Part shown: in pieces, positions 22,632 to 45,030 of the stretch
How the letters are laid out: every line of letters begins with the position of its first letter
Position numbering within the stretch: position 1 is the stretch's first letter
Assembly: GCA_004431415.1 (NCBI GenBank)
Contig: QPMI01000445.1
Coordinates: 62,001 to 126,000 of the forward strand
DNA from: Cyanophora paradoxa CCMP329
Taxonomy: Eukaryota; Plantae; Glaucophyta
DNA: 64,000 nucleotides
Direction of reading: 5' to 3'
Position numbers and translations under genes: made by a program
The notes under the pieces: generated by a model
What the model was told of the DNA's origin: nothing
Databases searched by the model: none
The model's input: the letters and a program-made list of their open reading frames with translations, nothing else

Positions 22632-24251
22632 CGAAATCTGCGCAACGTTGCGCGCTTCTAATTAGACTAGAGGCTGTGGCCGGTAATTCAAAAAAAAAAT
22701 TATATATAAATCCCCGCAGAAAACTGGGCGCGCAGGACTCCGGGAAGCGCAGATTCGTGCCGTACCCCGGGGTAGCTCTGCCCTTTCGCATCGTCCTGCT
22801 TCTCCTCAGTCTCCACGTCGTCTTGTTGGTCCTCTTACCTGTCTGCTTCCTGTGATTTACTAGGTCTTCGACTCGCCCCCGCCCCCGCTCGTCTCAGGAG
22901 GTGCAAGGTGGGGTCTAAAGTAGGGACGCTGACAGAATACAACAACTAATTATAAGTAATCCTCAGCGACTATCTATACAACTAATATAAATAATGCTAG
23001 ACAATGCTAGGCGCGCGTAGGCGTAGGTGGCTAGGCCTGGGCCTGCGCGCAGCGCCGCCCGGCGGCCGCCCACGTGCACCGTGCCTCCGCCCCGCCCGGC
23101 GAACCGCACCGCCGCCCGCGGGCCGCGCGCCGGTGCCCGGAGAGCTGCGCCGCCGCCCCGCTCGCCGCGCGCGCCTTCGCCCGCGCGGCCCCCCGGGCCC
23201 GCGCCCCGAGCCGTCCTCTGCCCACGGGCCGCGCCCCCGTCCCGCCTGCCGAGCCGCGCCGCCGCCTGCCGAGCCGCGCCGCCGCCTGCCGCGCAGCTGA
23301 GCTGCCACGCGCGCGTCGCGCCTCCGAGGCCCCGTCCCGCTTGGCGACTCGGCGAGCCGCGCCGATCGCTACCCGACCGCCCCGCCCGTCATATGCATGG
23401 CGCCGGCCTCGCGTCGCGCAGCCGCTGAGCCGGCCGCTGCGCACTCCCGCGTGCCGCGCCTGGGCCGGGTTAGCCGAGCAGCGGAGAGCGACATGTCCAG
23501 CTGGGGCCGCGCGGGCCAGGCGCGGGGACCGTCGGACACGGGAGCTCGAGGGCGGTGGCGCGCGCGGCTCGCGCGCTGGCAGAGCGGAGCGCGCACGCGC
23601 GGCGCGACGCCCCGGCCGCGCGCGGAGGCGCGGCGGGCGGCGGCGCGGGCTGTAGGCTGGCAGGCTGGCTGCGGTTGTACATGCCCCGGGCCTTCGTTGT
23701 GGCGGCGGCAAGTCGTCGGCGGCGGCGAGGAGCCTTGCGCGGGGTACAGCAAAAAGAGACGTCCGGCGGCGCCGGCCTTATCCACAGCGGGGTACCACAA
23801 AAAGACTTATCGCCGACGGAAAAAAGACCGACTTGCGAACTGGCCGACTTGGACAGCGTGACAGACAATCCGACGGGTAGCAAGGGGGGTTTGAGCAGCT
23901 GACCCCCCCTTGCAATCTTTCTCAATTTTGTCCTCCGCTTGTTAGTGATGTAATTTCTTCTGATATTGATGGTATCTCTAGCTCTAGCTCTTCTTCGCGT
24001 CTGTCATTCTCTGTCTCTAGCTCTAGATCTAGATCTGCTATAGCTAGGTCTGATTTACTTGTCCTCTCTTCTCGATCTGTCTCGCGCTCTGTGTCGATTT
24101 TAAATTTGGCTCTTTGTCTAGATCTCATCTTTTTTCGTGCTCTTGTCTTAGTTCTTTTGCTTTTTGTCTCTTTGCCCCCTGGGCAGCGCTAGCCCCCGCA
24201 GTGCTGGTGTCTAGAGGCTGTGGCCGGGACCCGGGAAGCGCGCAACGTTGC
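22632..24251. repeat. segment bracketed by shared direct and inverted short repeats (degenerate non-autonomous element?)
   Basis: CTAGAGGCTGTGGCCGG at 22667 and 24211; GCAACGTTGCGCGCTTC at 22642 inverted at 24235-24251; internal 20-bp tandem unit near 23245-23290. Confidence 0.35.
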
Positions 24252-24253
24252 CG

Positions 24254-24291
<38 letters not shown>

Positions 24292-26531
24292 CCTCGCGCG
24301 CGCGCCGCGCCGGCCCGCGCGCCCACCTTAATCAGCTGAGTTAAGCTAGCTTAGCTTCGAATTCTGTACTAAAGGTCGCTACGAGAGCGGCCAATCGCAA
24401 GTCTTAATTCTATTCAGTCCCGAAAACACTTTTTTTGGCTTCAGGCTTGGGGCCGGAATATCGATGACTAATTATTTTGGGTATTACAGTTTGCATGCCG
24501 AATTACTAAAAACCGAATTACAGTATGCATGAGCCTCCGGATCGATCCGAGGCTCCGGAATATATACCAGAATATACACAATCATTCGCAAATCATTCAG
24601 AGTCCAGACTCCAGAGTCCGACGGTCCAGACTCCAGAGTCCAGAGTCCAGACCCGTCTACCGTAGTACGAGACTACAACCGGTAATGCGATGATCAACGG
24701 TTTTAGTTATACTACTTATGATAATTAGACGAACTTCGGAACCAGCTCGCGCGTCTGTAGTACTCTAGACTGAGAGTCTAGATCGATATCTGTACGTATA
24801 CTCGTCTAACTAGTACTAACTTAGTAAGACTCTGACTCTCTGTCACACGGTCAGAGTCTCTGAGAATCCGTCTAACGTTGACTTAGTAACTTATTAATGA
24901 ACTGACAGTATACGTAGTCTAACGTACTACGGTAGATCGATCTACAAACTTGAATGAATTCGAACCGGGACTCTGGGCCCGAGTCTGGGCCCTGGGGCCC
25001 AGAGTCCGACGGTCCCAGACTCCGGACCCAGAGCCTGGGGGCCAGAGGCCCTGAGGCCCTGGCAGTGAGAGGGGCCTGAGAGGGCCGGCGCCAGAGTGGA
25101 CCCAGACTGCCAGGCTGGGCGGGAGTCTGGGGCCTCTGGAGTCTGGCCATGGGCCCCGTCAGTGGGCCCGGTCACCGGTGCCACGGTGGGCCGTCACTGA
25201 GTCACTGGGCCGTCAGTGCTCCGTCACTAGGACTCACTACTACCGTGGCCGTACGTATACGCGGGTGTGAAATTACACTGTGAATGCAACGACTAGGAAC
25301 AGATTTAGATCTAGCCTAGTAGAGGGCTCGCATTGGCTCCTTTGTGGACATAGCTGCAACCCCACTGGCTAACATTTAACCGTGTTCACGTACCGTGTTC
25401 GCCGTCAGGCTCTCAAGAGCGAACAAAGCGAACACACGAGCAAGTTCTCAACTACGAGTGGGCCGTTAAAAAAACTTTAAATTTCAGTCTTGAACTCATG
25501 AACAGCTCGTCTCATATGAGTGAACGCGGAGGTCGCGAATTGCGAATTAGTTATATAATTACCCAATTCAAGGGCCCGACGTCGACAACTCGGCGCCGGC
25601 GTCGAGTCGGCGACAACGCCGACAAGCTAGCCTCTCGGACAAGGCCGGTCACAATTCATGCAAGGGGCCAATAAAGATGGCTTTTTTAATTATCCGCCAA
25701 TTGCAAGTTGCAACTTAAACTTGCAACTTGCATTTCGCAAATTGCAAGTACTTGCAAGCTACTGGTCAGTGGTCATCGACGACTCATCGTTCGCCGACGA
25801 TCGGATCGGACTCGGACTCGGAGCCTCGATCGCGAGGAGCCGGTCCTTCGAGGACTCGCGAGTCGCGAGTCGCGACGAGGAGTTCCGAACTTCGGAATTC
25901 GAATGCCTCCGAGTCTTAAAAAAAGGCTTATACCGGTAAGCTTTCGAATTCGACTTCCGATTCAAAGTTCCGAATTCAACTCTCGCGGCGAATTCCGGCG
26001 AGTCGACGGCGACATGTACACTTATATATATATATATACATATGCATACCGTGACTGTATCGATATCATACTGTGAATCCACAAAGTTAGGCGCCGACAA
26101 AGTTACTAATTATATAAGTTAGGCGCGGATAGACGAGTTCACCCATTTGTCTAACTTAATCCCCGTCTAACTGTCCCTAAAGGGGGTATGCCATAGTAAC
26201 GCTTGTATGGAGCGACCCGCATGCGCAGCTCGTCTATCTTTGTGAACGTCTATCACGACGGGTGGGCAAACGTCTATGAAAAGCGACGCCTAACTTTGTG
26301 GACAGTAGTATGACCACACACGCGCGCGGCGCGCCGCGCGCCGCCTGAGAGGCCCGCCTCGGCCCTCGATCGCGAGGGCCGACTCCCGGGCCCCGGCCGA
26401 GGGCCGAGGCGCGCAGCTGCCGCAGTGCTGGCAAACAGTGGCAATTGCAAGTTCAACGGTTGGCAGGCACTGCGGCAATGGCAGCAACTTGGCAGTGTTA
26501 ACGTTGGCACACAACTTGGCAGCCGAGCGCT

Positions 26532-26789
26532 ACCGTGTGGCACTATAATATCGCGCCCACTTAATTACCGCGCCGAGAATTTGTTAAAACGCGGTAATTT
26601 GGTACCGCGGTAAAAAGCTGCAGCCAAGTTGCTCTATACCGTACCCCCCCCCCAATTACCGCCCAATGCATGCGCATGCCTCAAGTTTTTAAAAACGCGG
26701 TAATTTGGTAGCGCGTTATATTTCGGCCACCCTTGGCCCGGAGTTTTTAACGCGGTAATTTATGCCGCGGTAATTTAGTGCCACATGGT
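26532..26789. mobile_element. MITE-like element
   Basis: 14-bp terminal inverted repeats ACC(G/A)TGTGGCACTA with one mismatch; multiple internal CGCGGTAATT copies in both orientations; no coding capacity. Confidence 0.4.
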
Positions 26790-27492
26790 CACCGGGTAGC
26801 TGAGCGCGCATGCGCAGGCGGCGCAGCAGGCTGCCGCAGTGCCCGCAGTGCGCATGCCCGGTGGGCCGGTGCCATCATGGCATGCAGCCGCTGAGCTGTA
26901 CATGTGTAGCCTAGTAGCAGTGTGTACGTCACACAGTACGTGAAGGAGGATCGGAAGGCAGCAGCGCTAGCTATAGGCTATAGCTAGCTATAGCCTACTA
27001 GTATAGCGCGAGCTGTACGTACATCACGGTACATGTGCTCGTGAGCTCGAGGAAGGATCCGGACTCTGGCCCGCGGCCGGCGGAGTTCCGAAGTTCAAAT
27101 TCGAGTCGCCGGCGCGACTCGCCGCGGGCCGGGAGCAACACCCGGCTCTTGAGTCTTGACCCGAGCAGGCGACGGGTTGCATTTGCACCGAGCGCTGGCG
27201 CCATCGACTCGCAGCGCGGCGAGCGTCCGGTCGACGGTCCTGGCGCGGCAGCAACGAGAGGGTCCCGAATCCCGACGTACGACGTCGCCGTTGAATTGCT
27301 GCCTGCGCGATGGCGGCAGCGACGCAGCTCCCGCCCCTCGCCGACTGGACCTCGGAGGCGTGCTCGCGGAATTGCAAGCTGAAGCCTCTGAAGGTGCATG
27401 CCGGCCGCGCGCTTCCGTAATTTTCTGCGGCTGCCAGCGTCTAGAGCTGCCGTACGCGTGACCATGAGCTTGAGCACGCTGACCATGGCCAT

Positions 27493-33386: not shown

Positions 33387-35758
33387 ATGGCGTTCGTGGT
33401 CCCTGTCCTCGCGGCAGGCGTGTCGGGCAAGGTCCAGGCATCCGCGCCCGCAACATGCCCAGCGCGGAAGCTCGGGCGCGGCGCGGCGAAGGCCGGTGCG
33501 TTGCGCGGCCTTTGACCCCGGGGCGCCGCTGAGGCGGCATTCCCTCGGATTCAGGTCCCAAGAAGCTTGCCTGGGCAGCGTCCGCCGCCTGGAACGGCCA
33601 GGCACTGCAGTCGCGGGCAGTCCGGCGGCAGCAGTTCGTTGCCGTGTCTCCCGCCGTGGCTTCCATCGATGGGCCCTCTGTCCCGCTGTGCATCTTTAAG
33701 CCCGAGGATATCATCATTGACGAGGAGCGGTGCCTGGGTGAGTTACAGACCTTGCTGTCTGTGTCTCCACTGTATGACTCGCTGACTCGCCCCCGCAGGG
33801 GTCGGCGCTTACGGGCAAGCTTTCCTATGAGCGTGGTTTTAGCGGCACTCGTCTAAACACGCCCCCGCAGTGAGGTCTACGTTGGGACTGTTGAAGGCAA
33901 GAAGGTCATCGTGAAGCGCCTGCGGAAGGGCAACGTCGGGATGCGTTTCGCAAAGGTTGAGCTCTACGTCAACCAGGTAGCCTGCTTACGCGCGCCCGCC
34001 GCGGCCCGCCGCCGAATCGACCGACGCCGGGCCGTGCGCGCGCGCAGTATGTCGCCATGAACGGGGACCCCCAGATCGCCGTGCGCAGCCCCGAGGCCGA
34101 GCGAGCCCCCGGCCGCGCGCGCAGCCGACGCCTCCGCAGGCGTTCCTGGGCCACGCGATGAAGGACGGGAACCTGCACCTGGTCTGGGAGTACGAGGGCG
34201 AGTGGAACCTCGAGAAGGTCCTCAACAAGCAGAGCTGGATCGAGATCCTCGAGGAGCGCCTGGTGCGGCCCGGGACCCCGCGCCCCGCCCGCCCGCCCGC
34301 CTGCGCGCGGGGCCGGCGGCCGAGCGGCGGGGCGGGGCGGCAGCTCGGGGGCGTGCGGCCGGAGGACCCGCCGCTGGAGCGGCACGGGCGGGTGCTGCGG
34401 GAGACGGTCGGGCAGATGATGCGCGCCCTCGACACCGTGCACCGCAGCGGCCTCGTCCACCGGGGTCCGCCCTTCACAGCGCGCCCCGCCCGCGCCGGCG
34501 GCCGACGCGCGCCTGCTCCCCCGGGCAGACATCAAGCCGCAGAACTTCGTCATCGGCGAGGACGGCTACCTGAAGCTCATCGACTTCGGCGCCGCCGTGC
34601 GCCCCCGCCCGAGCCCCCGCCCCCGCCCGCGCCAGGCCGACGGGGCGCCGGGCCGGCAGATCGACTTCAACACGCGGTACGGCTACGACCCGCACGAGGG
34701 CGTCGGCGACCGCCGCTTCCTGCCCCCGGAGCAGGCCCGCAGCCGCCCCTCCTCACCCCCCGCCCCGCCCCGCCCTGAGGCGCCCCGCGCCCAGTTCGTG
34801 GACATGGAGCACCCGGACCGCTTCGACGAGTACAGCGCCGGCATCATCATGCTCGAGCTCGCCTTCCCCAACCTCCGGTGCGCCCTCGGAGCACCGGAGC
34901 ACCCGCGCCCGCCCCCGCGCCCCTCGCCGCGCCTGCCTCACGGCTGGGGCAGCGGGGTGTGCGAGTTCGCGAACGCGTCGAAGCAGATCCGCCGCTCCAA
35001 GTACTCCTGCGACCAGTGGCTCAAGGTCGGCGGGGGCCGGCCCGGCAGCCGCGCGGGGCGGGGGCTGAGGGGGCGCGCGGGGCAGAACCGGCTGCTGGAC
35101 GGGGAGATGGAGGACCTGGAGGAGGGCCTGACGCTCCTGAACGCCGACGACGGCGCCGGCTGGGACCTCCTCCGCCGCCTCATCACCAAGGTCCGCCCCC
35201 CGAGGCCGGCGCCCCCGCCCCGCCCCCGCCGCCGCGCCGACGCTGCCTCCGCTGCGGCCCGGCAGCTGCCCGGGGACCGCATCGGGTCGACGGCGGCGCT
35301 GAGCGAGCACAAGTACCTCCGCATGTGGCGCCCGTACCCCGAGGCCCAGCGCTCCTGCCCCTGGGAGCCCGTGCGCACCCCCCCCCCCCCCCCCCCCCCC
35401 TCCTTCCCTTCCCGGCCTCCCCGGGTTTACGCGGGGGGGGCGCAGGGCTACCACGGGACGCCGGAGGAGGAGGCGGCGGGGCGGGCGGCGGCGGGTGTGC
35501 CGGAGCTCGTGGCGCGCATGGGCGCCGACGGGATCGGCCGCCTCCGCCTCCCCGCCGACGTCGCCGCCTCCGCCTCCGACCCCCGCGAGCCCGCCCCCGT
35601 GCGCCCGCCCCGCCCCGCCCCCCGCCCCGCCCGAGCGAGATCTAACGTGGAGCGGGGCGCAGGAGCGGCTGGCGAGCGCGGACGCGGCGGAGAAGCTCAT
35701 GCCGCAGTACGGGAAGCCGTCCTCGCCCCTCCCCTCCGCCGCCGCCGACGCCGAGTGA
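33387..35758 (+). CDS. plastid-targeted STN7/STN8 (Stt7)-family Ser/Thr kinase
   Basis: Transit peptide MAFVVPVLAAG; LGVGAYGEVY; LHLVWEYEG; VHRDIKPQN; KLIDFGAA; LPPEQ; PDRFDEYSAG; LAFPNLR; LLNADDGAGWDLL. Confidence 0.9.
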
Positions 35759-37344
35759 CCGCTCCCCCGCGCCCCCCGGCCGCCGTTTCAAGCATCGCAT
35801 CGATGCACCAGATTCATGCAGGGCCCTCTCTCGTTTCAGCCGTAGCCATAGCAGTCGCATCAGACGCAGGCCAGCAGCCGCAGCCGCAGTTTCGATGATA
35901 GCTCCTCATCGCTTACATCGTGTTGGCGACGCCCGTGTCGCGCGCGCGCCACGCGCCTCTCCAGCGCTAGCGCTGCCAGGCTGGCCGGTCATGAGCACTC
36001 CCGTACGCGTGGTCACATGCATATGCGCTTTCAATCCCCCGCCGTGTGTGGTGCCGGTGTGTCTCCATAATTTCTTCTTGTTCGTTTCGTTTAGTTTCCC
36101 GTAGCCCGAGAGTTAGCAGCTCCAATTGTTTCCCGACTTCGCGTGTGTGTAGTTTGAGGCCTAGGTACTAGTAGCTTTATCAGATTTGCTCTTGTTCTTG
36201 CTCTATAGGCTGTCCGCCGTGTATCACCACGAATTCGAATGCGTTTTCAAAATTAACAAAAAAACACACTCATGAGAGCTCTCGTGTTTCATGTTTCTGT
36301 CTGCAGGGCGGAGAGAGCGGCCGGGCTGCAGGGCGCGGCGGCGAAAAGCAGACTAAGCTCGGGGTCGAGAATTTCGAACGGGACAACGGCAGGCGGTGAA
36401 TTCTCGTGTATTCTTGTATTCTTCGAATTCAGCCTTATTGACTGCGTTGAGCCTTGTCGCAATTAATGAGGTTTTGTTGTACATCCGCTTCGAGAGCGGC
36501 CGCAGGCCTAGCCTATAGCTAGGGCGCTGAGGTTAAAAGCAGACGTGGCTATAGTGGCCTGCCGCAGTGCGGCCACCGGCCGCGGGGCACCTGCTGCCGC
36601 CTGCCCTGCTGAGGCTTTAGCAAGGCTAACTTCAACGCTTCTGCCCTCTTGATGCTGGGCCTCGGCCCTCGGGGCCTGGCTCGGGCCTCATCGTGCATTC
36701 GATGACATGAATCACATGATCATGATCATGATCGGAGGGCCTTACGACTCAGTGACTCTCTGCAGCTGAGTCTGATCATTACGAGTTACGAGTCAAAATT
36801 TCTTATAATTAGCTATAGATCACAATTTGAGTCACGATATCGATTGCAAATAAGATCTCGAGCTCACGATCACAATTCGAATTCACGATCATGAATCATA
36901 ATCCGACGTCGACTCGGGCGACATGATCATTGATCAGCGCGCGTTAATTAATATTCAGCTGCACTAGTACTGCGGCACTGCGGCATGCAGCGGCTCGCCG
37001 CGCCGGCGTCTCTCCGGCTCGGCCCTCCATATATAGCTACTATGCCTTCCCCCCCCTCGCCCCCCCCCCCCGGGCCCCCCCCCCCGTGACGTCTCGGAAC
37101 CATTATAAGTTCGCGCCACGTCACGACCCACGTGTACCAATTATTTTTGCAGATCCCGTGTTCACAAGATTTTGGTCCCGTGACTCCCGTCACGACTCCC
37201 GTGAATGCGAAATGCATGTGTTTGCGGACGGAGAATCGTCAGAGATCGGAGCATGCTTACTAAGTTATGCGCGCGCATCCAGCGACCGGTATACCCCCGT
37301 TCGATCATGCGCAGCAGATGTACAGTCTACAGTACAGATCGAAG

Positions 37345-37823: not shown

Positions 37824-40800
37824 ATGCAGCTGGACCAAGCGCGCAGGAGTCGGAGGTCAGCGCGCGTGCGTATACGCGTGCACGTGCATGGCGCCGGCCG
37901 CGGACGGCAGCTCCGGCGCATGCGTGCACGTGGACCTCGATCGCGAGCTCCTTCAACCTCGCGCTTGTCGTCTGCGTGGTGGCCGCATGCTTGTGCCCCG
38001 CGGTCCGCGCGCAGTCCTTCTCGGCGTGGGTCTCGAGGAGCGCGATGGCCCCCGGCGAGAGCGTGCGCTGCTCGTGGTACAGCCAGCACTGGACCAGCAG
38101 CGACTTCGTCGCCCTGCGCCGCGTCGAGTCGCACGTCAGCAACTGGCTCCCCGGCGCCGACTCGCCGTTCCTCTCCTCCGCCTCGGGCTCCGCCGACCTG
38201 ACTGTGCCCGCCAACACGGCCGCCGGCACCATCACCTGCTGCTACATCCGGCAGACGGTCACGCAGACGCAGGTGCCCTGGGGCACATGCACGTGGGGCC
38301 TCTGCTGGGGCACAGGCGGCTACACGACCCAGTACACTTACGACTACACGGGACTTTCCTGCAGCTCCAATATTGCCCTTCGATGTGAGTTCAAAATATA
38401 TATTTAATTTGTGCGCGAATTGAATAATATATTGCCGTACTAATCATGATGCTTTGCGCCGCGGCAAATACGCAGGGCCCTACCAGCGCATGACGACGCA
38501 GGCGACGTCCGTCACCGCCGGCGAGACGGTGCGCTGCTCGTGGGAGACCAACGACCGCCTCGCCGGCGACCGCGCCGTCCTGAGCGTCGCCTTCGCCTCG
38601 CCCCTGAACAACACCCTCGACTGGGCGCCCATCGCCACCGACGCCGGCTTCGTCGACTTCCGCGTCCCCTCCTCCGCGCTCGGCCGGTACCAGTGCCACT
38701 ACACCCGCTGCACCGGCGCTGGATGCGGCGTCCAGATCCAAGCCTCGAGCTACAGCTTTGAGGTCGTCGGTGCGCATGCACATGAGCCTCACGCTTGAAA
38801 TGCTCCCTAATTATATAACTATTTATAATATGCCAGATCTCCTTCATCTCCGATCCGTTTTCTAAATTATTTTTTCTTGCAGAGCCGCCGTATTTCTTGG
38901 TGTGGGCGGATCGATCCGAAGCATACCAAGGCGGCGGTATCGGCTGCGCTTTTCGCACGAACAGGCGCTCCGCGAACGACTTCGTGGGCCTGTACCCCCA
39001 GGGCGCCCTGGCCCCCGTGGCCACAGGCGGGCTCCTGCCTCTGGGCCAGTACAACAGCTCCTTCGTGGTCATGTCTGTCCCGGCGGATGCCACGGGGCGC
39101 TACGAGTGCCGGTTTGTCCAGTACACGGGGGCCCCTCCCTACGGCTACGTCCCCCGCAACTACAGCTCGCCGGTCACGATCATCGGTGCGAACGCTGTTG
39201 ACTTCTTGCAATGACCTGCACATAAAAATTTGAGCGTGCTGTTTGCGCGACAGTTCCGCTGTTCAACACGACAGCATCGCCCTCGACGCTCAATTCGACG
39301 GCTGGCGCTCTCGTCCGGTGCAACTGCTCCACCCGCGCCGTTTTCTATGCCCCCTCGGATTTTGTGGGGCTCTACCCTGCGGGCGAGCTCAACACCAGCG
39401 CCTCCTTTCTCACCTCCCGGGCCGTCCCGACGTACGGCAGCTGCAACCTCGCCCAGTCGTACCTCCTGCCAGTCCCCGCGGGGTTCGAGGGCGCCCTCGA
39501 GTGCCGCTACGTCCGTCGCTCGGGGTCCTATTCGGGCGGCGTGTGGATCCCGCGCTACGAGATGAAGGCTCGCAGCGACCGCGTCCTGGTCCTCGCTCCT
39601 AGAGCTCTCAATCCTCCCACTAGTACTGCAAATAACACCGGTGCGCATCCAGCCCGCGGCTAGACGCTGCGCATGCGCAAGAAAATTGCAGTTGCATCTG
39701 CTAGCGCTCTTCACTTTTAATTTCTGGCGTGCGCGTGCACACGCACAGGTTCTGGTCCCCTTGTCCCTACTCCGACGCCCATGCCCGCCGACGCTGCGGA
39801 ACCTGTCGAGTTCAACGTAACGATCTCGCCCGAGGCGGCCGCGCCCGGCTCGGCTGTGCTCTGCTCCTGGTGGAGCAGCTCCGGATCCGGCGCCTGGCGC
39901 AACGAGACGGACGCCATCGCGCTGTACCCCGTCGAGGAGCTCCCCTTCAGCGTCGCCTTCGTCGCCTCCGCAGAGATTCGAGCGAACTCAATCCCCGCGG
40001 CTGTCCAGCTGCGGGTGCCTTCGGAGGCAGGGGCCGGGGCCCTCTTCGAGTGTCGCTTCGTCCGGTTCGAAGGATCCGATCGCGAGATGGTCTCCATGCT
40101 TGCACGCAGCCGTACGCTTCGCGTAGTCCTCCCCGGTGCGCGCGATGAACTCTGGTGAGCTTATCGCGTTTCTTAAATTCGAATTCGCGTGTACAGCTCC
40201 AACGTACAACATGTCCGTCCAGTGGACGCCAAGGGGCGCGTCGAGCAGTATTGGGAACACTACTTCAACACTGGAGAGGGGCCGCATCCGCTGCACGTAC
40301 AGCGCCAGTGCCGGGTCGCCCTCTGGCTCGTCGGACTTCGTGGCGGTCTTCAGAGCTGGAGTGAACAGCAGTGAGCCGTCTGCAGCGGCAGGGGCACCGG
40401 CGTGGCTCGACCGCGCGGCTCAGAACGGCTCCGCCTCGTTTCCGATCGCGGTAGGGATGGAGGGCGACTTCGAGTGCCGCTACGTTCGGCGCGCGCCAGT
40501 CGGCCCGGGTCTATTGCAGTTTGTTTTCGAGTTCCAGATGCTGGCGCGTTCGTCGGCTGTGCAGTTGCCCAAGCGTGAGCACAGCTTACACTGTGGTATA
40601 CGTATATCAATCAATTTATCTAATTCGCAATCGTTTGCGCAGCGTCGTTTGCCGTGATGGTGGATGTTTCGAACGCCACCGCGGGCTCGACGATCCGATG
40701 CAACTTCACGAGCTCGAACGGCTTTGTTTCAGGTCGAAGCTTCCTTGGACTCTACCTGGCAAGTCAGCCGCTCACGAGCGGGAACCATCTGTCCTGGTCC

Positions 40801-43800
40801 GAGTGGCTCCCCTTCGGCCTTGGATCGGGGCTCTTCGAGTTTCGAACTCCTCTGGGACAGCCCGGAAGATATGAGTGCCGATACATGGAAGTAACCGGCC
40901 TCTCGTGCCCGTCGTGCACCTATCAAATGAGAGCAAGGAGCACAAGTGTGCATGTCACCGGTGCGCTACACGTGCAAGAGCATGCGCAAAAGCAATATCA
41001 AATTTAAATACGAAGCTCATCGTTTTTTTGTATCGCAGTTCCTCCCGCAGTCTTTTCGACTTCATTGTATTTTCAGGGAACTCCGCTACAGGCAAACGCG
41101 CGCGTTTTGTCGGGAGTGTCTTTGTCTTGCGCTTTTAATGTGACTGCGGGAGCGCAATCTCAAGGAGATTTTATTGGCTTGTACTACTCGCCAACGGCGA
41201 GTAATATCACCTCGAGTGCGTTCAATCCTCCGATTGCGTCTGCATCGCTCGGCCTGGCACCGAACAGCAGTGGATTTGTAACTCTTGTGACTTCGGCATT
41301 CATATCTGGTCAAGTAGAGTGCCGCTACGTCAGACGCGCAGTCACCCTGTCTGGATCGCTTCAATTTGCACCGAAAGCCAGAAGCACTCCAGTTTTCCTC
41401 GTTGGTGCGCGCACCAGTAATCTTGTGAAGTAATCATGATTTTGTGATCATGATTTATTTTCTTTTGCATTGCAGCCGTAGAGCTCATGATCAACTATAC
41501 AGTCACTGCCTCTGCGATTCTTCAAAATGGGTCCACCACTTTCGCAGAACACGGCGAGTACGTTGCCCCTGGAGAATTAGTAAGATGCCGTTTCTCTGCG
41601 TCTGCAATTAGAAAATCGCTGGAGACGTCGACGGATATTATTGGGATTGACCAACTGCAAGCATCAGCCTGGAAGCCATCCGATTTCGTAGAGCTCTTTG
41701 ACACCTTCGGGTATCAAATATCGTCTGCGGTCCGTTACATTCAAGGATCTTCATCGTACCTTGATTTTGTGCTTCCCGAACTTGAATTCGCTACGACGTC
41801 GTTCGGTATTGGCTCAAAAACGGTCGGGTGCCGTCTAATGAGACGCGAAGTCAGTCCAACCTCAGCGGGGTCGTACTGGTTTACTACGCTTGCTTCTAGC
41901 CCAGTGCTCAGCGTGCGAAGTGCGGTTTTTTATTTTTCTTGTCTTGCACGTACACGTATTTCATTGGTGCTTACATATTCTTCGACGTACATGTACAGGC
42001 GGCCTCCGGCAGCGCCTTTCTCAGTTGAGCGAGAGAAGAGTGTCTGCTTTTCTGTCCAATGCGATCTACTCTTTAAAGGACAGCAGTATGAACACCCCTC
42101 TTCGTCAATCCATTATTAGCTCGGACGGCAGACTGTCAGTCTTCGTGCACGGGAGCACATCGACAATCTTTGTCATCTTTCGAGGTGAGAATCGTCAACT
42201 GCTATGTAAAACCAACAATTAATCTGAGATTGGTCGAATACTTTAATATACTCAGGGACTCAAGATTTTGTGGATGTGATCACAGATGTGGCCATTGTGC
42301 AAATTCCATGCATCCTAAATGGAAAGTTTTGTGGCGGAGTTCATTCTGGATTTTATGTAATGTATAGCACGTGCGTGCATGAAATTCGAATTTCGAATTT
42401 TCAAAGAGCACTTAAACTTCAAGATATAGCTGGATCTCTCATTGCTGGTTTTCTCAGACTTCGAACTGAAGTCCGGAGTGCAATTTGCAACGTTAACACA
42501 GGCGATCTGGGACCTAACCCTCGCGTCGTTTTTACTGGTGCGCTGATCATCATACAATCTCGCTTAGTCAAGCGCTAGCTCACTGAGTCATAGGGCACTC
42601 TCTTGGAGGTGCTTTGGCGACGCTTGCTGCTGCTGACTTGGTGACAGCCTCGAGCCCTGGGTGTCCTACGCTTCAACAGAACGCAGCTCGAGTGGAGCTC
42701 ATTACGTTTGGATCGCCGAAAGTGGGCGACCCTGTCTTTGCAATCTGGTTCCAAAGTTTGCAGATTCCAGTTACGGCATACGTGCGGACCAGCTCCGACA
42801 AGCAGAGGCACGACCTTGTGGCAACTCTTCCACCAAATCTGGGGTACTTTTACGATCACGTTCACTTCGAGCCTACGTACCTGCCTTGCGCTTTCGGGGA
42901 TCCCGGAGCAGGTTGCTCCCCAGCCTTTACCGTGAAGGGCACCCTCGTGGCGGCTGCTGGGGTACTGGTCTCACATCTTGTGGTCCAAACGGCCATTATA
43001 GAATACGGCTTGAAGAAAGCGCCTGTGATCGTGGAAGCAGCGGTGGACTGGACAGTGTCGAGGGCCAAAGCCGCGTGGAACACATTCTCGGGCTGGTTCT
43101 CGCGACGTAGGCGTCTGTCTTGGAACTCACTTGAGGAAGCCGCTCTGTTTTTTACATCGGCGGCTACTGGGGGCTTAGGTCTTCACGACATGCAGGACTA
43201 TTGCAAGCGCTTGCTGGCTGGGTCGAGCAGCGAATGCGCCCTCCTCCTCGAAACAGAGACTTATGCATCGGGCTCCCGATCAAGAGTCCTATCTGCGACA
43301 GATACGGCGTCGACAAGTCTTCTGGGCCTTGAAGGCAAATGCTTTCATGTATTGTTTCTTTTTACACTCGCTACCTGCTTTCAATCGTTTGACACTACAT
43401 GTGAATTGCGTAGACGCAGCCATGTACATCGGACCAGACACACTCGAGATTCGTTCGCCTCCGATGGATGCTCTGCTGAATGCGACGGTGTACTTCTCGA
43501 ACGTCGGCACCGTCGGCGCGAACATAACGGTTCTCGTCGACCCCGAGGAGGCCGCAGAGTACCTGACGCTACCCGCCCAGTTCTTCTCTGTTGAGGCGCG
43601 CGGTCTCGCCGTCTTCCCCGTCTTCATCAACGCCAGCGTCGCCCGCACGGCGGCCGTCACGTTATACTTTGTTGTCCACTTCGACATTTCGAAGAACCTC
43701 TCCGCGGCCTTGGGCCTTCCGCAGAGCGTCCTCGATGCCGTGCCGCTGTCCATCCGAATCGACGGTGCGGAATTTATTCAAAGCAGCAGTTTCCATGACC

Positions 43801-44826
43801 GTGCCGCCCGGCTCACGCCCCGTGCACAGAAAGCATCAAAGAGAAGCCGGAACCGCCCGTTATCGAGACGAAACGCGACGTCGACGCCGGCGGCGCGAGC
43901 TCGAGCCAGGAAAAGCTGCCCTACAGCCGGACGTCGGCGCTGGCCGCCCTCGCGCTCGACTACCCGTTCGCGGCGTGGGGCGCGAGCCCGGAGCCGGCGG
44001 GGCGCTTCACGGCGGCGTTCGCGCAGAAGTTCGGGCTCTCGCCCTCCCGCGTGCGCATCCTGGCGGCGCGGGCCGGCAGCACGGTGGTCGAGCTCGAGGT
44101 GCTGGAGGCGGACGGCAGGGCCGGCGCCGCCGACGAGCCGTCGGCCGAGTACGTCGGGCGCAGCCTGCAGGCGCAGATCGACGCCGGCATCTTCGCCCTC
44201 GGCTTCGAGTTCCCCTTCCTCTCCGGCTCCGTCGCCCGTGCGCCTCTGCTTCGGACCTTGACTTTGCAGTCGCGCACTCACACGTGCACGCCGCCCTGCC
44301 AGTGCCGGAGCCGGAGACGCCGCAGCCGCCGTCGAGCGTCTTCGCGCAGACCACCCCGTCCCCCTCTCCGGTCGCCTACGAAGAGCCGGCGGCCGCCCCC
44401 ACTGCGGCGCCAACTGCAGAGTTGGTACCGGTACCGGTGCCAGAGCCGACGTCACCCCCTTCGAGTTCGGGGGGCGGCGGGGGCCCGCTAGACCCCGCAC
44501 CGACCCCGTCCGGACGCCCCGAGAACGAGCTCGCTGCGGAGGTCGCGGTTGTCTCCAACCCGGGAGGGCCGGCGGGCACCGGACCCGGCACCGGCGCTGC
44601 CGGCCAGGGTGCCGGTGACGGCAATTCAAAGCGCGAGAATGAATTCGAAGCCAACGGGAGCTCCGGCGGCGTCAACGCAGGGGCGGTCGCCGGTGGCGTC
44701 ATTGCTGCGGTCGCCGTCGTGGCTGCCGTGGCTGCCGCGACCTTTGTGGTTATCCAGCGGCGAGGCGTGTCGGCCGCAGGGCCGGATGCGGAGCGCGGCT
44801 CAGCAGTGCCGATCATCGTCATGTAG
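37824..44826 (+). CDS. type I membrane protein: signal peptide, 9 Ig/SKICH-like repeats, class-3 lipase, Ig-like domain, SEA-like domain, P/S/T stalk, TM helix
   Basis: Signal-like FNLALVVCVVAACLCPAVRA-Q; repeats VxCxW...DFVGLY...YECRYV...ARS; lipase IFVIFRGT, VHSGFY, FTGHSLGGALA, ITFGSPKVGD, DLVATLPP, HDMQDY; RVRILAARAGSTVVELEV; TM AVAGGVIAAVAVVAAVAAATFVVI-QRR. First exon and start are tentative. Confidence 0.85.
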
Positions 44827-45030
44827 GCTTTCTATTCGAATTCCCTTCGAATCCCTTGGCGAGCTTCGAATTCGCTTGCCAGAAATGAAATCTTCATAAA
44901 TATTAATTATAATGCCAGTACTAGTATCCATTCTATTCAATTTCGATTAGCTCATCAATGAACCTTTTCGTCGCCGTCACTGTGCCTTATATATAAAATT
45001 AGCTGATACCATATATAGCTATATTTATTT

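Follow-up and report, generated by a model that had tools for sequence, protein, structure and literature searches.

Beta-sandwich domains of the SKICH family (Pfam PF17751) are known from animal proteins such as NDP52/CALCOCO2 and TAX1BP1, where they occur singly, lie in the cytosol, and bind proteins or target membranes. A related fold forms the N-terminal domain of HECW1/2 (PF16562), and another the N-terminal domain of purple acid phosphatases (PF17808/PF16656), represented by lupin PPD1, where a single copy, fused to a metallophosphatase, serves this hydrolase as an accessory domain outside the cell. Class 3 lipases (1lgy, 3tgl/4tgl and 2yij) are small soluble fungal and plant enzymes of ~270-420 residues or are polytopic, the latter including the diacylglycerol lipases, whose lipase domain is cytosolic. 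Type I membrane proteins of the SEA/mucin type end in a small domain, a Pro/Ser/Thr-rich stalk, a transmembrane helix and a short tail. A 64,000-nucleotide stretch of the genome of the glaucophyte Cyanophora paradoxa CCMP329 (contig QPMI01000445.1, positions 62,001 to 126,000; hereafter the window) carries a locus on the + strand, at window positions 37824-44826, that would combine all of these elements. The locus is probably a single gene of 16 exons whose product, a type I membrane glycoprotein some 1,937 residues long, carries both repeats and a lipase. The predicted order is a signal peptide, nine modules resembling SKICH and purple acid phosphatase N-terminal (PAP-N) domains, a class 3 lipase domain, two small domains of which the first is probably immunoglobulin (Ig)-like and the second possibly SEA-like, a mucin-like stalk, a transmembrane helix and a cytosolic tail, and each of the nine modules would contain a disulfide and occupy one exon.

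The locus consists of a row of stop-to-stop open pieces, each of which holds one recognisable protein segment. Joining these pieces at GT-AG sites yields 16 exons (numbered 0 to 15) and a coding sequence of 5,814 nucleotides, or 1,937 codons, with a sole stop at 44824-44826. Each intron carries an in-frame stop or shifts the frame if read through, and splicing is therefore required for the frame to continue; at the level of sequence, the single spliced frame that an earlier note on this DNA had described is reproduced at 37824-44826. The introns are 56-113 nucleotides long and lower in GC than the exons they adjoin, and introns 1 to 14 are uniformly in phase 1, those within the lipase domain included. 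Junctions 1-4 match exactly those of a public gene model, P0001 (tig00020685_g12936.t1). Of the 15 donors, 11 begin with GTGCG, usually in the form G|GTGCGC, and exon 8 has a second acceptor 12 nucleotides downstream, at 41050. Phase-1 donors of the form G|GTGCG(C) were recorded at 38770, 39186, 39641, 40136, 40961, 41405, 41920, 42538, 43765 and 44238.

The first coding piece, exon 0 (37824..37855), would supply the ATG and the first 10 codons, which give a positively charged start suited to a signal peptide. A small ATG exon is needed because the signal-like hydrophobic segment that follows has no in-frame ATG upstream, and exon 0 is the sole ATG-bearing piece found that joins this segment in frame; its intron (37856-37947) is of the GT-AG type and is 73% GC. 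Exon 1 (37948..38384) holds the hydrophobic core of the predicted signal peptide, about 37857-38011 in coding-sequence terms, together with repeat 1, as indicated by hydropathy, the repeat alignment and the junction of P0001. The hydrophobic segment spans residues 12-30, reaches a Kyte-Doolittle peak of 2.32 and is followed by AVRA|Q.

One repeat is encoded by each of the nine exons 1-9. All homology and fold searches were performed with single exons, and the joined coding sequence was used only for frame, hydropathy and coordinates. Repeats 2 to 5, in exon 2 (38476..38769), exon 3 (38883..39185), exon 4 (39254..39640) and exon 5 (39749..40135), are placed by the gene model, the repeat alignment, a hidden Markov model (HMM) of the repeats and P0001, and repeat 6 in exon 6 (40197..40574) is placed by the first three of these. 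Exon 7 (40643..40960) encodes repeat 7, the copy that was modelled in three dimensions and is characterised by AlphaFold2 and structure matches, and exon 8 (41039..41404) and exon 9 (41476..41919) encode repeats 8 and 9, the latter the longest and most divergent, on the basis of the gene model and alignment. The nine repeats align with two invariant cysteines and the pattern G..VRC.[WF]...DF[VI]GLY...VP...G..ECRYVR...ARS, in agreement with the early and late cysteines and DFV(G/A)LY-like strand that the first reading of the sequence had picked out. When all six frames of the window are translated, an HMM built from the nine repeats matches these nine places and no others, which, for a self-built model, speaks to uniqueness within the window and not to significance. 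The nine repeat exons have no direct Pfam match at E<=1; the gathering cut-off of SKICH PF17751 (23.4 bits) is not reached by the window repeats, and repeat 7 has no match at E<=0.01.

A profile of the nine repeats was searched against 1.84 billion representative proteins. It matched 197 of them at E<=1e-3, of which 60 remain at E<=1e-10, and almost every matched protein contains several matched stretches. The top match is P0001, the window's own partial public model, and the multi-repeat relatives, which provide the independent measure of significance, match at E-values of 9e-41 and below. The other matches resemble secreted enzymes and come from metagenomes and a few named bacteria, namely Patescibacteria and Acidobacteriota, the latter including Vicinamibacterales, Blastocatellia and Pyrinomonadaceae. 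Pfam calls the repeats of these relatives SKICH (PF17751), HECW_N (PF16562) and sometimes fn3_PAP; in a set of 119 single-domain segments, 56 were called SKICH (best E-value 9e-9), 36 HECW_N and 8 fn3_PAP. The best match of the window profile to a solved structure is the SKICH domain of NDP52, which aligns over its full length at a weak E-value of 0.5. By this transitive, profile-based route, the window repeats are homologous to the SKICH family. Partner domains in the matched proteins include Peptidase_S8, GDSL lipases, an apiosidase-like glycosidase, metallophosphatases, pyrroloquinoline quinone (PQQ) sugar dehydrogenases, a beta-helix lyase-like domain, papain, Big_7, CARDB and fn3. Galactose-oxidase-like domains and LamG were also seen as partners in the bacterial repeat family (proteins P0002-P0253).

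The AlphaFold2 model of repeat 7, built from a 119-sequence alignment, is all-beta with a predicted local distance difference test (pLDDT) score of 92.8. Foldseek places the SKICH domains of TAX1BP1 and NDP52 (template modelling (TM) scores of 0.66-0.67) and the N-terminal domain of HECW2 (0.63) at or near the top of its matches. VIA-align ranks the N-terminal domain of lupin purple acid phosphatase (3zk4) first, with a Z-score of 11.4 and a root mean square deviation of 2.3 over 97 residues, followed by eight SKICH entries with Z-scores of 10.1-10.9. The purple acid phosphatase domain is thus the best structural match, although the window repeats show no direct sequence match to it. Across the SKICH and HECW1/2 domains, TM-scores of 0.63-0.67 and Z-scores of 9.1-10.9 over 93-96 of 105 residues indicate the same fold as the window repeat, and the strand motifs of SKICH correspond to those of the repeats (V.C.W, DWIGIF-like and YQFCYV-like). 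Neighbours of the repeat in the ESM Atlas include bacterial SKICH and metallophosphoesterase clusters. The likeness to SKICH and fn3_PAP domains that had been noticed from the letters alone is thus borne out by the Pfam matches of the homologues, the weak profile match to NDP52 and a confident model that matches those domains, and the predicted beta-sandwich fold agrees with the model and with its best Foldseek matches. It is right to describe the repeats as beta-sandwiches of SKICH/PAP-N type. In contrast to known SKICH domains, those of the window stand nine in tandem behind a predicted signal peptide, with a cysteine pair in each.

The cysteine pair separates the window repeats from most of their relatives. 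In the bacterial proteins, the two cysteine columns are mostly V and F, and outside the window both cysteines occur together only in P0024, where both repeats have them, and in P0144, a protein on a 2-kb contig of uncertain origin and without context. P0024 is a transcript-derived protein of another glaucophyte, Cyanoptyche gloeocystis (MMETSP1086), in which Inhibitor_I29 and Peptidase_C1 domains are followed by two repeats with the same cysteine pair, and among the single-domain relatives of the window repeats it scores best. P0024 resembles the predicted Cyanophora protein in being a glaucophyte hydrolase whose repeats group with those of the window in a tree, but it is a cysteine protease with two C-terminal repeats instead of nine N-terminal ones, and no transmembrane segment was seen in it. 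A maximum-likelihood tree of the 119 segments has many long branches and weak resolution; within it, the nine window repeats lie on one side of a branch with a Shimodaira-Hasegawa-like approximate likelihood ratio test (SH-aLRT) value of 80, and 12 cysteine-pair repeats lie on one side of a branch with a value of 85. This grouping is compatible with duplication of symmetric phase 1-1 exons as the means by which the repeats multiplied inside the gene; the array may have grown within the glaucophyte lineage.

A wider proposal is that glaucophytes possess their own disulfide-bonded version of the SKICH/PAP-N module, which elsewhere occurs mainly in secreted bacterial enzymes, as a targeting arm for secreted or surface hydrolases, used on a lipase in Cyanophora and on a cathepsin in Cyanoptyche. 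In Cyanophora, phase 1-1 exon duplication would have raised its number to nine, and it would have been joined with other phase-1 modules (lipase, Ig-like, SEA-like and stalk with transmembrane helix) to give a surface lipase directed against an external target such as bacterial envelopes or lipid particles. This proposal is offered tentatively and is, taken as a whole, rather improbable. If it were true, exon shuffling of surface proteins, which is usually thought to be typical of animals, would have been at work in a glaucophyte.

The lipase domain is encoded by exons 10 to 12. Exon 10 (41999..42184) contributes the predicted N-terminal part, ends in ...FVIFRG, and has no in-frame ATG before the start of the domain; it was assigned from a motif in the sequence. 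Exon 11 (42256..42537) runs from T.DF..VHSGF to ...VVFTG, and exon 12 (42594..43316) holds the core. Exon 12 alone matches Pfam Lipase_3 (PF01764) with 46-51 bits against a gathering cut-off of 22, whereas exons 10, 11, 13, 14 and 15 have no Pfam match even at E<=10. Exons 11 and 12 are colinear with a bacterial Lipase_3 protein, P0152, aligning to its residues 78-136 and 152-229, respectively; as the two exons align in order to one protein, the lipase domain is taken to be split by introns 10 and 11. Intron 11 cuts inside the GHSLG motif and splits its glycine. The nucleophile elbow GHSLG(G), with Ser1274 at codon 42599-42601, aligns to HSLGGA of 1lgy and 6qpp, and in the HDLV motif, with Asp1345 at codon 42812-42814, rhDLVatlPP aligns to krDIVPHvPP of 1lgy and DIVPTLPP of P0152. 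The stretch from HSLGGA to DLV also aligns to the Rhizopus and Rhizomucor lipases and to Arabidopsis PLA1-IIgamma with E-values of 3e-4 to 5e-3. The LHDM motif places a putative catalytic histidine, His1469, at codon 43184-43186, and the H-x4-Y spacing of LHDMQDY equals that of HSLSTY in P0152, although LHDMQDY lies beyond all the alignments obtained. The GHSLG serine, DLV aspartate and HDM histidine that had been proposed at the outset are therefore all present as motifs in a domain that scores above the Lipase_3 cut-off. Membership of the class 3 lipase family, with serine and aspartate in place, is confirmed by sequence comparison, while the assignment of His1469 is putative.

The GHSLGG elbow and the aspartate are common to the window domain and the class 3 lipases of known structure, but the window domain forms residues 1116-1513 of a large predicted membrane protein, in contrast to the small soluble enzymes. 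A homologue search with exon 12, within a length window, returned only two bacterial Lipase_3 proteins. No close relative of exon 12 was seen in IMG/VR viral or JGI metagenome contigs, and so no sign of a viral origin was found.

Exon 13 (43420..43764) encodes a beta-rich domain of 114 residues that has four N-x-S/T sites and may be an Ig-like E-set domain. Its look-alikes in a language-model search are all Ig-like (FixG_C, NPCBM_assoc and HYDIN-type Ig) and serve as a lead; it has no sequence match in Pfam or the Protein Data Bank (PDB), and the Ig-like label that the domain had been given thus goes further than these look-alikes. Exon 13 was also considered as a tenth repeat and was rejected, as it does not match the repeat HMM. 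Exon 14 (43830..44237) encodes a linker and a domain of ~100 residues with a ...RAG-STVVELEV motif (GSTVV from 44075). The SEA-like character claimed for this domain was not substantiated: it has no Pfam match at E<=10, including to the SEA domain PF01390, no PDB SEA match and no homologues in a protein search, and a SEA cluster appears only at rank 6 of a language-model search, with a score of 0.83. A single-sequence model, with a pLDDT of 49.5 and so without a confident fold, predicts a helix, a strand RVRILA, a turn AG-S and a strand TVVEL. The C-terminal order of the predicted protein and this G-S-[TV]-V-V-like motif do resemble those of SEA/mucin-type type I proteins, and a SEA-like domain is possible.

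Exon 15 (44303..44826) encodes, by composition and Kyte-Doolittle hydropathy, a stalk rich in P, S, T, A and G (to ~44673), a transmembrane helix (~44674-44760), a 23-residue tail that starts with RR, and the TAG stop. A run of 124 residues in the stalk is enriched in A, P, G, V, S and T, and the transmembrane segment at residues 1896-1914 has a Kyte-Doolittle value of 2.89. The protein has 26 N-x-S/T sites; the repeats and exon 13, on the side predicted to face outwards, account for 25 of them. Hydropathy and composition are consistent with a type I single-pass topology and agree with the signal-peptide-like start, Pro/Ser/Thr stalk, single C-terminal transmembrane helix and short tail of the initial description. 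The protein would enter the secretory pathway, and the stalk would keep its lipase domain clear of the membrane, facing either the cell exterior or the lumen of an endomembrane compartment. The repeats, at the far end, may act as a binding or spacer arm; the module is always appended to a secreted hydrolase in the bacterial relatives and to the cathepsin in Cyanoptyche. From sequence and models, we infer splicing into one mRNA, enzyme activity, this location and ligands for the repeats; surface display, with a role in attacking microbes or in scavenging lipid, is conjecture.

The topology suits two locations, and the same protein could reside in the endomembrane system, in a lysosome- or vacuole-like digestive compartment, perhaps after cleavage from its anchor. 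Apart from the predicted Cyanophora protein, the cysteine pair was found in just one eukaryotic protein, a cathepsin-L-type protease with an I29 propeptide; enzymes of this kind are typically lysosomal or secreted, which favours an internal site. Against it, no sorting motif was recognised in the 23-residue tail, though none was tested for, and long mucin-like stalks are more usual in surface proteins. Residence in such a compartment is possible but somewhat unlikely.

Several observations weigh against a single, expressed and active gene, and the first of these concern its transcription and annotation. Four sequencing runs that contain the gene stretch also contain its introns, and were therefore taken as DNA. 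Of the gene's words, 0-2% occur in the 17 probable RNA runs, and when four of them were compared with 38900-44899, no read or contig crossed any junction. The sole piece from an RNA run is a 246-nucleotide contig (X9) of depth 2, which is unspliced and lies at 42734-42979 inside exon 12; traces of a transcript or carried-over DNA could account for it, and the other matches in RNA runs are 18-nucleotide chance matches. As contig sets that cover few conditions, these runs are no proof that a transcript is absent. The public model P0001 (EukProt EP00741 Cyanophora paradoxa), 97-100% identical to the locus, is 577 residues long, spans 38045-40158 and covers repeats 1-5 only, without a signal peptide, and no public model for the remaining exons appeared in the profile search or in the protein search with exon 12. 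The single transcript assumed in the earlier note is therefore not borne out by the RNA runs, which give no spanning junction, and the public annotation splits the locus. Within the gene model itself, exon 0 is the least certain part, and the junction of exons 9 and 10 has a phase-0 alternative that uses a donor at 41913 and an acceptor at 42024. The tree behind the proposed amplification likewise rests on 97 columns and contains long branches.

The end of P0001 after repeat 5 and the lack of RNA evidence linking the parts would be expected if the locus held two or more genes, one for a repeat protein, secreted or cytosolic, with repeats 1-5 or perhaps as many as 9, and another for a separate membrane-bound lipase. 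However, P0001 starts at an internal methionine at 38045 and ends where it does only because it reads through the consensus G|GTGCGC donor of exon 5 into intron 5 and meets a stop 7 codons on, at 40156. Exons 6-9 encode the same repeat in the same phase, and exons 6-12 have no suitably placed ATG and signal peptide of their own. A lipase begun at the first internal methionine would miss the N-terminal strand of the fold, and it can be argued that the lipase exons, lacking a usable ATG or signal peptide of their own, belong with the upstream exons. Division into separate genes is accordingly judged unlikely. A single gene as modelled here would correct a public model that covers less than one third of the protein and misses its signal peptide.

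A second set of adverse observations concerns composition. The GC content at third codon positions (GC3) traces a U along the gene: from 0.92-0.96 in exons 1-2 it drops to 0.47-0.61 across exons 8-10 and 12, with a low of 0.31 in exon 11, and is back at 0.96 in exon 14, while neighbouring coding stretches have values of 0.89-1.0. The trough of 0.31-0.61 across exons 8-12 is atypical here and compatible with relaxed constraint; its possible causes are weak expression, relaxed constraint, or a gradient of composition, recombination or gene conversion along an unusually long gene. A foreign insert was rejected as a cause, as repeats 8 and 9, which lie in the trough, are clear paralogues of the other repeats. 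Together with the near absence of the gene from the RNA runs, the drop in GC3 might mark a silent or decaying relic, real in structure, hardly transcribed, under relaxed constraint and without present function. Set against this are 1,937 open codons, 15 pairs of splice sites, intact catalytic motifs and both cysteines in all nine repeats; the intact frame, splice sites, motifs and 18 cysteines argue against a dead gene. The low GC3 also spans repeats 8 and 9, which retain the family pattern, and the scarcity in RNA carries the limit already given for contig sets. It is quite unlikely that the gene is such a relic.

The third set lies in the lipase domain. The putative histidine follows the aspartate by 124 residues and falls outside every alignment, and in P0152 a histidine is present shortly after the end of the alignment, at a far shorter distance from the aspartate. 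The stretch between aspartate and histidine (42815-43183) includes a hydrophobic segment at 42929-43000, with a Kyte-Doolittle value of 2.11, which is the third such segment of the protein besides its N- and C-terminal peaks. This segment could be a lid or a membrane-dipping element, or it could upset the simple topology. A second transmembrane helix at residues 1389-1407 was considered and rejected, as it would divide the catalytic triad across the membrane, and the segment is read as part of the lipase domain. An inactive lipase domain, in an adhesin or receptor that binds through a lipase-like fold, would account for a histidine that cannot be aligned, for the long interval with its hydrophobic helix, and for an N-terminal half too divergent for Pfam alone to recognise. 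The GHSLGG elbow, the aligned aspartate and the H-x4-Y motif resembling that of P0152 are nevertheless all present, and scores were artificially lowered by searching exon by exon. Loss of activity is very doubtful on this evidence, and a single gene for a membrane-anchored and presumably active lipase is the preferred reading.

The broader pattern of SKICH-type repeats joined to a secreted hydrolase is common in bacteria, GDSL lipases included. Homologous tandem repeats are carried on secreted hydrolases by P0002, which has a Peptidase_S8 domain and 10 repeats, by P0019 (MBA3550921.1, from Patescibacteria) and by P0004; in P0019, which has 3 repeats and a GDSL lipase, and in P0004, the repeats precede a lipolytic enzyme, the order seen in the window. 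The bacterial catalytic partners, however, are SGNH/GDSL enzymes and members of other families, unrelated in fold to the alpha/beta Lipase_3 domain of the window, and the bacterial repeat proteins lack the cysteine pair, stalk, transmembrane anchor and introns. Exons 10-15 match none of the 150 listed SKICH-repeat representatives, and PF01764 is absent from 120 relatives of the bacterial ten-repeat protein. Literature searches returned no paper describing a bacterial SKICH/HECW_N-type tandem-repeat family on secreted enzymes, and nothing relevant on bacterial SKICH or on a Cyanophora lipase. The claim that no protein of this architecture had been described accordingly stands, with no Lipase_3 among the 150 and 120 relatives and no paper found, and the locus represents a new domain architecture made from known families.

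No long-standing open question is touched by the finding. If the gene is expressed as modelled, the SKICH fold of the cytosolic autophagy receptors and phosphatases found in animals would, in an alga, work outside the cell as a tandem module, and it would be linked to a large and barely described repeat family on secreted bacterial enzymes. The gene would also be a clear non-animal example of a mosaic with one domain per exon and all introns in phase 1, and its product a natural membrane-anchored class 3 lipase, in a family whose known members are small and soluble or polytopic.

The GC content of the window is 0.65-0.84 in most 2-kb bins, with the exception of two lower-GC stretches, one of which is the gene locus itself (0.54-0.64). 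The second, at 24000-27000 (0.53-0.61), contains no long open frame and is probably intergenic. Upstream of the gene, a + strand stretch at 34158-35900 resembles a protein kinase gene, with the motifs ...HRSGLVHRG... and ...DEYSAGIIMLELAFPNL..., and on the - strand a downstream neighbour is present from ~45360. The gene is flanked by lower-GC spacer of ~1.9 kb upstream and ~0.5 kb downstream.

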